Both the position numbers and the translations under genes were made by a program. A stretch of DNA of 64,000 bases, taken from the NCBI GenBank assembly GCA_977016875.1, contig CDRNST010000036.1, positions 5,890,001-5,954,000 on the forward strand, written 5' to 3'. Each line of letters begins with the position of its first letter. Position 1 is the first letter of the stretch. Source of the stretch: Pavona decussata. Its lineage: Eukaryota. Shown here one piece after another: positions 32,382-59,199 of the stretch. The notes under the pieces are model-generated. The model saw only the letters and a program-made list of their open reading frames with translations, was not told the origin of the DNA and ran no database searches.

Positions 32382-33011
32382 TTACACTTTGCGATCTGTT
32401 AGGGAATTTTCTTGAACGTTGTACGATTGCAACCAGGACGTACGACCAAAATTGTAGAAATGGTTACAGGTGCCAACAGAATCGAGGGCCCATGCAGGGT
32501 GGTAGTGAGGTGCAGTGTAGAAAATATGACACGAACAGAACCTAAGAGCACTAGGTTGAAAGCCGGGCGGAGGAGTACACTGCAAATTACCGCCAGAGTT
32601 GGAAGGAAGCCATACCAACGGTCTTCCTTCCGGTATTTGTGGCTCGATCACGGCCTTGACTGGAAAGTGTATTTTTTCCCCAGTCGTTTTGCGTTGGTGG
32701 CTTTTTGTGTAATGCCTTGAAGAGTCGATGACTTTCTTCTCAGGTCTTCGCTTAATTCTTTTAGAGTTGCGTCGCTTTGGTTGGTACTTGTACCCAGGGT
32801 TTTCCATCTTATGTTGCTCTGTAAGTCGCCTCGCTTCTTCCACGTACGGTTCTTTGTCTTCTTCAGAAAGTTTTCTCCAAGCTGCACCTAGAGCTTTGCT
32901 TACTTCAGCGTTGTTAATTCCAGGGTGCTCCTTAAGTATGTGGTAGCGCTTTTCTCTGCTCCAAACCATGAAACAGTTCATTGGTCTTTTAACGTGTGCT
33001 TCAGAGTCCAT
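32382..33011 (-). CDS. Sox: Sox-family HMG-box transcription factor, intronless, divergent (group uncertain)
   Basis: N-terminal HMG box HVKRPMNCFMVWSREKR...NNAEVSKALGAAWRKLSEEDKEPYVEEARRL..QH..ENPGYKYQPKRR. AATAAA (minus) at ~32062-32067. Confidence 0.93.
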   Translation of the reverse strand: MDSEAHVKRPMNCFMVWSREKRYHILKEHPGINNAEVSKALGAAWRKLSEEDKEPYVEEARRLTEQHKMENPGYKYQPKRRNSKRIKRRPEKKVIDSSRHYTKSHQRKTTGEKIHFPVKAVIEPQIPEGRPLVWLPSNSGGNLQCTPPPGFQPSALRFCSCHIFYTAPHYHPAWALDSVGTCNHFYNFGRTSWLQSYNVQENSLTDRKV

Positions 33012-57255: not shown

Positions 57256-58493
57256 AACTATAACTCAAGAATTCACGCACCTCGAGCTCCTGTTACAGAA
57301 GGGTTCAATGATGTGAATAAGCACTGCTACATATCCTACACCTATAGGTAGTGTAAATACCCCGTCCTTGTGTGAGACAAATATTTGTATTGACTCGGCC
57401 GTTAAATAGAATTTTGTAATATTTCGCTGATTACCAGGTTAAGTTCACTTGGTTTTGGAAAGAAAGAAAGCTAACTTTTATATTTTATCTCTACATCGAT
57501 AACGCAGACATAAGGCTTCCGTCACACTCTGTCGTCTGATTTCAATATAAATGGTTGTGCAACAGCACATTTTAAAAGATACTAAAACTTGTTATATTTT
57601 CCTTTTTTTCTGAAACATAAAGGCGAAGAAACAATTCCTATTGCTTTAGCCAGTATTTTCGGTAAAGTTAGACAAGAGGTTTTGAAACGCGGCATAATCA
57701 GATTATATACAATGTACATATTGAAACTGAATGCAAATCTCACTCAAAGAAAAAGGTCCAGATTTATTTAAGATCATATGAACGGAAAATAATACTCTTT
57801 CCCACAAATTAAATTATAGTAGTCCAAACCTCAAATCTGTAGATGATGGGTTTTGCTAAAGTAAGTTTGCCTCGGATTGAGCCGGGTCATCCCATTACAT
57901 AAATCAGTTCTTCCTCGAGCAAACGCCCTGGGCGCATATTTAAATTTCCTATTATTTAGTTGTTACGTCGTTTTTATTTTTAATTTTTGCATCAGTAAAC
58001 TGACTTTAGGTTTGGAATATTAACCTATTATTCATTGCAGTAAATCCAGAGAGTCATTTCTATCGCCTTTCACAGCCGTGCACTATTTTGAATTTTATTT
58101 ATTGGTGCGCGAGAGAGAAATATGGCAGTTATCAGCGGGTCAATAGTAAGGCAAATTTGACAGGATAGTTCTGAAAAATGATACGAAAAATCATATTTTG
58201 TGGTCACGGATAACTGGTTAGATTGAGCCGCAGATTCAAGAAATTTGATATAGTTTGCAAAAGGCAAAAGATCAATGTTCATAATTGAAGTGTCAAGCTC
58301 ACTTAAACAGATAACCAATGAAAACTACCTAAGCTTTTCAATTATAGTTTCAGTTAACATATTAAATAGTTCACTAACTGAAGCCTTTTGTAATGCGTTC
58401 TCGTCGGGTTTTTTTCTTTCAGAGTTTCTCTACATCAGCAAGTCGACTAGACCTTTGCATATAAGTCTCATCTGGAATCGTTACACTGAAATT

Positions 58494-58760
58494 ATGATCA
58501 TACAAGAACATCTCTGTAGAGAAAGAAACGACTTTGGTGCAAATCCTGAACTAAATGAGCAAACCCGGTCACTATGCCGGCAGGTTGGAAAAGAGTTACG
58601 CGGCCTTGGGGACGCCCTTGAGGACCAGTATTTTCGTCCACTTCAAGGTGCCCGGCGCAATCGTAGAAGAATTGGAATTGATATTGGAAGAAACGTGACA
58701 GAAATTACCAGATTTATTTTACTCCGGTGTGTGAGGGAACTTCTTGGTCTCAATAATTGA
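58494..58760 (+). CDS. Candidate BH3-only Bcl-2-family protein (88 aa)
   Basis: VGKELRGLGDALEDQY (58584-58631) fits the BH3 consensus h-x-x-x-L-x-x-h-G-D-x-h. A basic RRNRRR patch and a C-terminal amphipathic ITRFILLRCVRELL follow. There is a strong acceptor ttttttctttcag| at 58422/58423 and downstream AATAAA sites. Confidence 0.65.
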   Translation: MIIQEHLCRERNDFGANPELNEQTRSLCRQVGKELRGLGDALEDQYFRPLQGARRNRRRIGIDIGRNVTEITRFILLRCVRELLGLNN

Positions 58761-59199
58761 ATTCTAAGCGTATCCGTTTTCCTTCTGAGGCGTCTTTGTG
58801 GCTGTGCCATTTAAAACGATATACCTAGAGATTTTCAGTTATGAGAGAATCATGTATTCACTTTGGGGAGAGGTACATCTTAGAAGTTTAAATCTTAAAA
58901 GGCTGCCGCCACAATCAAGATTACGTGGAGATTTCATGGACCTCTAAATAAAACAGCCAAAGGCTGCAGGAGAAATCCTCACGTTGTACAAATATGCGCA
59001 TGCGTCTACTAACTTTATATTCAGGATCAAAATCACAGTGGGGTCAGTTCGCTACATATAAAGCCGACTTAAAAATGAAGACAAACAGTAACACGCTTCA
59101 AACTCCACGCATGTATACATCCATAGTTGTGCATATATATCGCAAATTCCGTTTTCAGATGTACAGTAAATGCATATTATTTTTAAGACCAACGTACAG

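Follow-up and report, generated by a model that had tools for sequence, protein, structure and literature searches.

Results

Structure of the gene

The window examined here, a stretch of 64,000 nucleotides (nt) from the stony coral Pavona decussata (C36:5890001-5954000 of the 602-Mb assembly G000, which was also the genome searched), contains near its 3' end a small gene whose product resembles the Bcl-2 homology 3 (BH3)-only initiators of apoptosis. A sequence-only reading of the window had described an open reading frame (ORF) of 88 amino acids (aa) behind a splice acceptor and had taken it for a BH3-only protein with Bim-like architecture; the ORF, the acceptor and all the other elements that it described were found in place. 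The gene comprises the following features:

58365-58422, forward strand: 3' end of an intron with a branch-point-like CTAAC, a polypyrimidine tract and a CAG acceptor (from sequence and conservation)
58423-58493, forward strand: 5' untranslated region (UTR) of the coding exon, 71 nt, with indels and in-frame stops in relatives
58494-58760, forward strand: complete coding sequence (CDS) in one exon, 88 aa plus TGA (ATG at 58494, TGA at 58758-58760)
58545-58634, forward strand: predicted long amphipathic helix carrying the BH3 motif, aa 18-47 (predicted local distance difference test, pLDDT, of the block 83-88)
58584-58619, forward strand: BH3 core V31-G-K-E-L35-R-G-L38-G39-D40-A-L42 (VGKELRGLGDAL, aa 31-42), from conservation, PDB profile and complex model
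58653-58670, forward strand: basic RRNRRR cluster, aa 54-59, part of the linker that follows P49 (from sequence)
58662-58742, forward strand: predicted amphipathic C-terminal helix, aa 57-83 (from the model; its aligned counterpart in subfamily B is the IIIGATLLGIATNIVL tail)
58761-58975, forward strand: probable 3' UTR with AATAAA at 58947-58952 (conservation extends beyond the stop; the 3' end is putative)

The acceptor region (58400-58422, forward strand) reads gggtttttttctttcag, with the CTAAC about 40 nt 5' of it, and the exon begins at 58423. Conservation in a DNA alignment of three species sets in sharply at AATAGTTCACTAAC and continues through the branch point and the acceptor, and a polypyrimidine-CAG acceptor lies 20-75 nt 5' of the ATG in all the homologues, lineages and paralogues examined (about 100 nt in the transcribed homologue P0017). 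Downstream of the ORF, an AATAAA is seen in the window and in the relatives L001 and L013, and is absent from L002.

In the window no stop interrupts the reading frame over the 80 codons that precede the ATG, the acceptor included, as could be the case if the ORF were the terminal exon of some larger and unrelated protein with a CDS beginning in upstream exons. However, the stretch between acceptor and ATG carries frameshifting deletions of 1 nt in L013 and 8 nt in L002, and in-frame stops lie 14 codons 5' of the ATG in L013, 3 codons in L014 and 5 codons in L033, a contig of the transcribed homologue (TAG TAG). Therefore, the CDS starts at 58494 and positions 58423-58493 are UTR; judged from these comparisons, it is incidental that the window has an open frame 5' of the ATG. 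RNA-type data were available from P0017 only, a homologue 45-49% identical to the window protein that is represented by about 40 short contigs from many runs, ten of which were examined (L033-L042); the contigs of the close relatives L001 and L003-L013 and of P0019 (L053-L062) are genomic, not transcripts. Four different sequences abut the same base of the P0017 coding exon, at the equivalent acceptor. One of them is the intron (tttgccttgtttggtttcag), i.e., an intron-retaining form, and the other three are mutually unrelated, each with a terminal CAG as expected of upstream exons; sequencing adapters form the ends of two contigs, and one contig finishes in a poly(A) run preceded by AATAAA-like signals. 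The joining of three upstream sequences at one base is direct evidence of alternative untranslated 5' exons in P0017, so that the transcription and splicing predicted for the exon hold in this homologue to the exact base. Since these three exons share one coding exon, and given the stops and indels described above, the larger-protein explanation is refuted for the relatives by sequence comparison and is scarcely credible for the window, in line with the expectation that the exon is not spliced into an unrelated protein.

A donor-like site, GTAAGT at 57861-57866 (within the entry 57822-57866), lies 560 nt 5' of the acceptor, preceded by AAA in the window and by AAG in L001, and from its sequence could be the end of an untranslated 5' exon. 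A conservation profile against L002 and L013, in which such an exon was sought, showed no distinguishable islands because the background identity to these two was too high. Within the upstream intron, about 218 bp (window 58148-58364) are missing in the closest relatives L001 and L013 and are kept in the more distant L002, a distribution that indicates a lineage-specific deletion in the former.

Homologues and selection

Intact ORFs, mostly of 77-94 aa, were found in more than 30 distinct sequences of coral-derived assemblies at 37-88% identity, with some gene calls being longer (101-125 aa). A word-indexed search gave same-length ORFs at 86% and 77% identity, an exhaustive HMMER search extended these to nine cluster representatives (56-113 aa) reaching down to 37-40% identity, and a profile search yielded 26 clusters of homologues. 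Members occur in Tara Pacific coral metagenomes and in one record labelled coral metagenome. An exact look-up in the contig collection returned no record identical to the window protein, and NCBI and UniRef contributed none of the family members found in these searches.

The shortness of the ORF, its lack of a Pfam match, the failure of the annotated NCBI and UniRef protein sets to yield a member, and the purely mechanical gene callers behind the database ORFs would all be compatible with a non-coding exon, either a long non-coding RNA or a UTR, that contains by chance an ORF and a BH3-like string. The pattern of substitution argues otherwise: start and stop positions of the ORF are conserved in the homologues, the frame is free of stops up to a synonymous divergence (dS) of about 1.7, and the indels within it are in frame (+3 and -6 nt in the three-species DNA alignment). 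The ratio of nonsynonymous to synonymous divergence (dN/dS, Nei-Gojobori) is 0.21-0.52 in every pair with dS of at least 0.2 (dS about 0.2-1.7). Amino-acid conservation is position-specific, and five copies in the genome keep both frame and motif. On these comparisons the non-coding explanation is largely refuted, and we consider it highly improbable. We are thus confident that this is a real, conserved, small coral coding gene, and its family is conserved in assemblies derived from scleractinians.

The sequence-only reading had anticipated conservation with dN/dS below 1, which stands for the ORF, for the BH3 residues and for the more distant pairs, and fails for the closest ones: against the two closest relatives dN/dS is 1.0-1.1, a value based on only 12-16 substitutions. 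The identity of the ORF is also barely higher than that of its flanks (about 93-94% against about 90% in L013, and 84-86% against about 80% in L002). Both observations would fit a copy that is drifting in this species or genus, under relaxed constraint or recently inactivated, in a family that is functional elsewhere. Yet the substitution counts are too small for a ratio near 1 to be meaningful in the closest pairs, the window and all the population-level variants of the sister species (P0001, P0003-P0007) have an unbroken ORF, and the nucleotides of the BH3 core are identical in three species; drift or inactivation is therefore very unlikely.

The BH3 motif and its recognition

The BH3-like motif described at aa 31-42 is present, and V31, L35, L38, G39, D40 and L42 lie on a predicted amphipathic helix, as in a BH3 motif. 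Within the subfamily of the window protein (12 sequences), L35, G39, D40, L42 and R48 are invariant, and R29, V31, E34 and R36 are nearly so. Across three subfamilies (15 sequences), the only invariant residues are L35, G39, D40 and L42, which correspond to the h2 leucine, the small residue, the aspartate and the h4 position of BH3, with C28, E34, R36 and R48 nearly invariant. The least conserved BH3 position across the family is h3, which can be L, I, V, A, R or Q.

The family profile was compared with 177,635 distinct PDB sequences at E<=10, a search unbiased towards BH3. It gave 57 matches; setting aside one designed repeat protein, attributable to its biased composition, and a small number of synthetic or other peptides, they are BH3 peptides or regions of Bim, Puma, Bak and Bik. 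The alignments cover profile positions from about 28 to 57 in register and reach the tyrosine and arginine (Y46 and R48) downstream of the core; family positions 30-50 align with Bim (IAQELRRIGDEF..., 1pq1_B), with the Bak BH3 peptide (4d2l_B) and with Puma (2roc_B), which bears out the proposed register with Bim and Bak. At the level of profiles, the collective specificity of these matches for BH3 is striking. A feature search of the ESM Atlas, in which scores below 0.9 are treated as leads only, returned two unnamed clusters first and then, as the only named families, PXT1, Noxa (PMAIP1), BMF, Bim and Bik.

Pfam detected no domain at E<=10 in the window protein, the Bcl-2 family PF00452 included, in agreement with the claim that BH1 and BH2 are missing. 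Among the 15 family members it gave sub-threshold matches to Bclx_interact (two members, best E=0.016) and to PMAIP1. The Bim family profiles Bclx_interact (PF08945) and Bim_N (PF06773) did not match the window protein at E<=10, and hence we do not file it as a Bim orthologue; the resemblance is at the level of the motif.

Predicted structure and groove complex

AlphaFold2, run with the family alignment, predicts helices at aa 4-13, 18-47 and 57-83 with a predicted template modelling score (pTM) of 0.35, a value that indicates no globular fold. Together with the Pfam result, the separate helices point to a protein that has neither BH1, BH2 or BH4 nor the globular Bcl-2 fold.

As a possible partner we used residues 1-162 of L023, a Bcl-2-like protein of the same genome, and modelled them with aa 15-55 of the candidate alongside three controls. 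The complex scored 0.86 against 0.03 for the best control, which speaks for likeness to a BH3 ligand rather than for binding; the score mark applied is reached by 51 of 78 solved complexes and by 2 of 108 mismatched pairs. The runs share at least 93% of their contacts, and the partner has a pLDDT of at least 73. In the model, the helix lies in the groove, with an interface made up of aa 18-20, 24-25, 27-40, 42-43, 46 and 48. The contacts of lowest error join G39 and D40 to G98 and R99 of the partner's NWGR motif, and L35 to residues 86, 90, 99, 102, 103 and 106, and the modelled pose is the canonical one of a BH3 in its groove.

The basic cluster and the terminal amphipathic helix named in the sequence-only reading were both recovered. 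The cluster RRNRRR is poorly conserved in the family, and the linker (aa 48-56) is non-helical and of low confidence in the model. The hydrophobic moment over aa 58-75 is 0.75, and aa 71-84 read ITRFILLRCVRELL. However, when the 18-mers of the window protein are ranked by hydrophobicity, the top one averages 0.87 on the Kyte-Doolittle scale and includes R73, R78, R81 and E82, against a mean of 1.75 in the tandem paralogue L029. A C-terminal hydrophobic segment of about 16-22 residues, as in tail anchors, is thus found in L029 and not in the window protein. Therefore, the label of Bim-like architecture suits the family better than the window copy: a BH3 followed by a C-terminal amphipathic helix is there, and the hydrophobic tail is there in L029, whereas the window copy has no transmembrane anchor.

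Paralogues and possible Bcl-2-family partners in the genome

A profile search of the genome found four further members, so that there are at least five genes in three subfamilies, with the same frame and motif kept:

L029:1480-1716 (C36:5959287-5959523), forward strand: tandem paralogue, subfamily B, 78 aa, BH3 VASELRSIGDTL, tail IIIGATLLGIATNIVL
L030:1486-1755, L031:1435-1674 and L032:1411-1665 (C171, about 978.5-998.6 kb), reverse strand: three clustered paralogues, 80-90 aa, BH3 VARELRVVGDAL, AARELRIIGDSL and VARELRVAGDAL

L029 lies beyond the window, about 10.8 kb downstream of the window gene, with a polypyrimidine-CAG acceptor 40 nt 5' of its ATG, and has orthologues in other coral assemblies (P0102, P0106, P0111-P0116). 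Genes of subfamilies A and B share a contig in at least three genomes, including two other assemblies (P0002 with P0106, P0009 with P0112), and the tandem pair must thus be old. The third subfamily, that of C171, is also present in other assemblies (P0099-P0101, P0104-P0110), and each of its three members here has a conserved C-terminal hydrophobic segment of its own (LLxQMLLNLLITW). Each of the three subfamilies has N- and C-terminal parts of its own that are conserved. The possibility that the ORF derives from a transposon or a virus was also considered and ruled out, as there are only five genome copies and the place of the window gene beside its neighbour is unchanged in three assemblies.

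Among possible partners, the genome has 17 matches to PF00452 above the cut-off, and the open frames among them include the Bcl-2/Bcl-w-like L020 and L023 and the Bak/Bok-like L019 and L022. L023 (1381-1944, reverse strand) encodes a complete Bcl-2/Bcl-w-like protein of 188 aa with a transmembrane tail and lacks the conserved intron after GGW. This intronless gene occurs in two near-identical copies (L023 and L024, on contigs C200 and C8), with a 99% identical counterpart, P0049, in an ENA assembly, and looks from its sequence like a retrocopy of the intron-containing L020 (C339). The closest named relatives of its protein are those of Porites lobata and P. evermanni (79-80%) and Desmophyllum pertusum (78%), followed by Oculina patagonica (77%), Acropora cervicornis (75%) and Nematostella (55%). 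These relatives, together with the coral metagenome records of the candidate, place the source of the window among the scleractinian corals.

Discussion

Comparison with BH3-only proteins already described

The coral protein shares with Bim (BCL2L11) and Puma (BBC3) the core register h1-x-x-E-L-R-x-h3-G-D-x-h4 and, downstream of it, an aromatic residue and an arginine (GDxLExxYxRP in the family, GDEFNETYTRR in Bim and ADDLNAQYERR in Puma). Like them it is short and has no Bcl-2 fold, and the model predicts for it that it binds the groove with an Asp-Arg(NWGR) contact; as in Bim, the BH3 stands ahead of a C-terminal hydrophobic or amphipathic segment. It differs from both in having no significant full-length similarity (the Bclx_interact, Bim_N and PUMA profiles are unmatched by the window protein), no dynein-light-chain motif region, a much shorter length (88 aa) and a C-terminal helix that is not a transmembrane anchor. 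Because the alignment spans only about 20 residues, orthology to Bim or Puma cannot be claimed. With the tail-anchored Hrk and Bik it shares a layout in which a C-terminal hydrophobic segment with basic flanks comes after the BH3 helix; this layout is clearest in L029, and Bik is among its neighbours in both the PDB and the ESM Atlas; unlike in these proteins, the segment of the window copy is polar and amphipathic, and no similarity extends outside the BH3.

Within the Cnidaria, four BH3-only candidates are known from Hydra vulgaris (HyBH3-only-1 to -4; Lasi et al. 2010), of which HyBH3-only-2 binds HyBcl-2-4 with a KD of 149 nM, kills cells and is the lone pro-apoptotic one (PMC7489894). These are likewise small, and the HyBH3-only-2 peptide (IGACLRAIGDDI) has the same L-x-x-h-G-D spacing; the same tripartite Bcl-2 logic is expected in both. 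Outside the motif, no relationship was seen, with the quoted peptide being compared and no Hydra sequence occurring among the search matches. For anthozoans, Fig. 5 of Suraweera/Banjara et al. (2022; PMC8998228) shows 'potential BH3-only proteins' from Acropora millepora, A. digitifera and Nematostella vectensis, proposed, like ours, from sequence alone; these came from NCBI, whereas the coral family members did not, and the two sets may overlap. Six motif strings of the coral family gave no match in the collection of papers searched.

Interpretation and proposed mode of action

Taken as a whole, the data are best explained by a small coral gene of BH3-only type, an interpretation that we hold to be probable. 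Its identity as a BH3-only protein, as first proposed, draws support from residue conservation, the PDB profile, the ESM Atlas neighbours, the sub-threshold Pfam matches, the missing Bcl-2 fold and the complex model. As the model suggests, the product is quite likely a BH3-only-type ligand of Bcl-2-family grooves, and with somewhat less assurance we regard it as a putative pro-apoptotic initiator in vivo. What is new is the family; the class to which it belongs is a known one.

In the mode of action that we envisage, one or possibly several alternative untranslated 5' exons would be spliced at 58423 onto a final exon that holds the whole 88-aa frame. The product would consist of the amphipathic BH3 helix (aa 18-47), a basic linker and a second, C-terminal helix, with no globular fold. 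Its BH3 helix may enter the hydrophobic groove of multi-domain Bcl-2-family proteins, where L35 and the flanking hydrophobic residues would fill the pockets and D40 would pair with the NWGR arginine of BH1. This binding might neutralise pro-survival members and/or activate Bak/Bax-like effectors, with mitochondrial outer-membrane permeabilisation and caspase activation to follow. The C-terminal helix probably recruits the protein to membranes, as an amphipathic surface helix in the window copy and as a true tail anchor in L029.

Several observations weigh against this interpretation. The h3 residue, L38 in the window protein, is replaced by R or Q in two lineages. The PDB matches are each marginal (E 0.03-1.4), and the silence of Pfam on the window protein tells against its recognition as a BH3 protein; such marginal and sub-threshold profile matches cause annotation pipelines to leave the family unflagged. 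Selective constraint appears only in the comparisons over larger distances, with dN/dS near 1 among the closest relatives and little difference between the ORF and its flanks. The high complex score may reflect the memory of many solved Bcl-2:BH3 complexes, and the physiological partner may be another protein than the modelled L023, which is an intronless copy of L020. By its residue composition, the C-terminal helix of the window copy is too polar for a membrane anchor. Expression and splicing at 58423 in the window species are what we infer from a homologue that is only 45-49% identical, and it is from sequence and model that we infer binding, partner specificity, membrane targeting and killing activity of the product.

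Moreover, BH3-like motifs are also found in proteins that do not kill. The gene could thus encode a conserved helical protein that uses such a motif outside apoptosis, through Bcl-2-like proteins in the control of autophagy, mitochondrial dynamics or calcium handling, or with an unrelated partner, and that is not a death initiator. The motifs are known in non-classical killers, and PXT1, one of the ESM Atlas neighbours, is a borderline case; pro-apoptotic activity was found in only one of the four Hydra candidates (PMC7489894), and both the missing anchor of the window copy and the dN/dS of about 1 among close relatives would suit a non-apoptotic role. However, the invariant residues are exactly those that groove binding needs, the likeness to Bim and Puma reaches the Y and R positions outside the core, the predicted pose is canonical with its Asp-Arg contact, and L029 has the BH3 and tail-anchor layout typical of BH3-only killers. 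On this evidence a non-apoptotic role is unlikely, and we return to the BH3-only initiator as the preferred explanation.

Significance for coral cell death

Corals possess vertebrate-like multi-domain Bcl-2 proteins and caspases, and the sensors upstream of them have not been pinned down. In Acropora, the multi-domain Bcl-2 and caspase sets have been characterised, and the BH3-only repertoire was named an open problem (Moya et al. 2016; PMC4715348). The window gene is a strong candidate for an upstream trigger of coral mitochondrial cell death. With its four paralogues it might, as a tentative proposal, represent a so far uncharacterised BH3-only repertoire of stony corals, made up of three subfamilies with a single-exon CDS of 77-94 aa, a BH3 of the Bim/Puma type and a C-terminal membrane helix. 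If the shared ELRxhGDxLxxxYxR reflected common descent, tail-anchored initiators of the Bim/Puma type would be older than the split between cnidarians and bilaterians, and the coral genes, with their alternative 5' exons, could be stress-responsive death switches in bleaching.

The analysis provides a concrete, conserved family whose BH3 residues are defined and for which paralogues and candidate partners are at hand, so that an acknowledged gap in coral cell-death biology becomes directly testable, by binding and killing assays, by expression under heat and light stress, and by comparison of tolerant with sensitive colonies. It also contributes an anthozoan case to the question of whether BH3-only proteins have a single origin or several, and makes plain that the coral annotations in the databases searched overlook small single-exon ORFs that lie behind untranslated 5' exons.

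Other features of the window

Elsewhere in the window, the following ORFs were recognised:

39175-42120 (forward strand), 42589-43833 (reverse strand) and 4704-5456 (reverse strand): ORFs with a LINE-type reverse transcriptase (RVT_1; E 1e-24 to 2e-38)
32382-33011, reverse strand: single-exon ORF of 209 aa with a Sox-like HMG box (PF00505, E=4.5e-25)

The reverse transcriptase ORF at 39175-42120 coincides with the sole GC-rich block of the window (GC 0.48, 40-42 kb), and a further ORF at 38198-38827 (reverse strand) has the same length as the HMG-box ORF and is unrelated to it.

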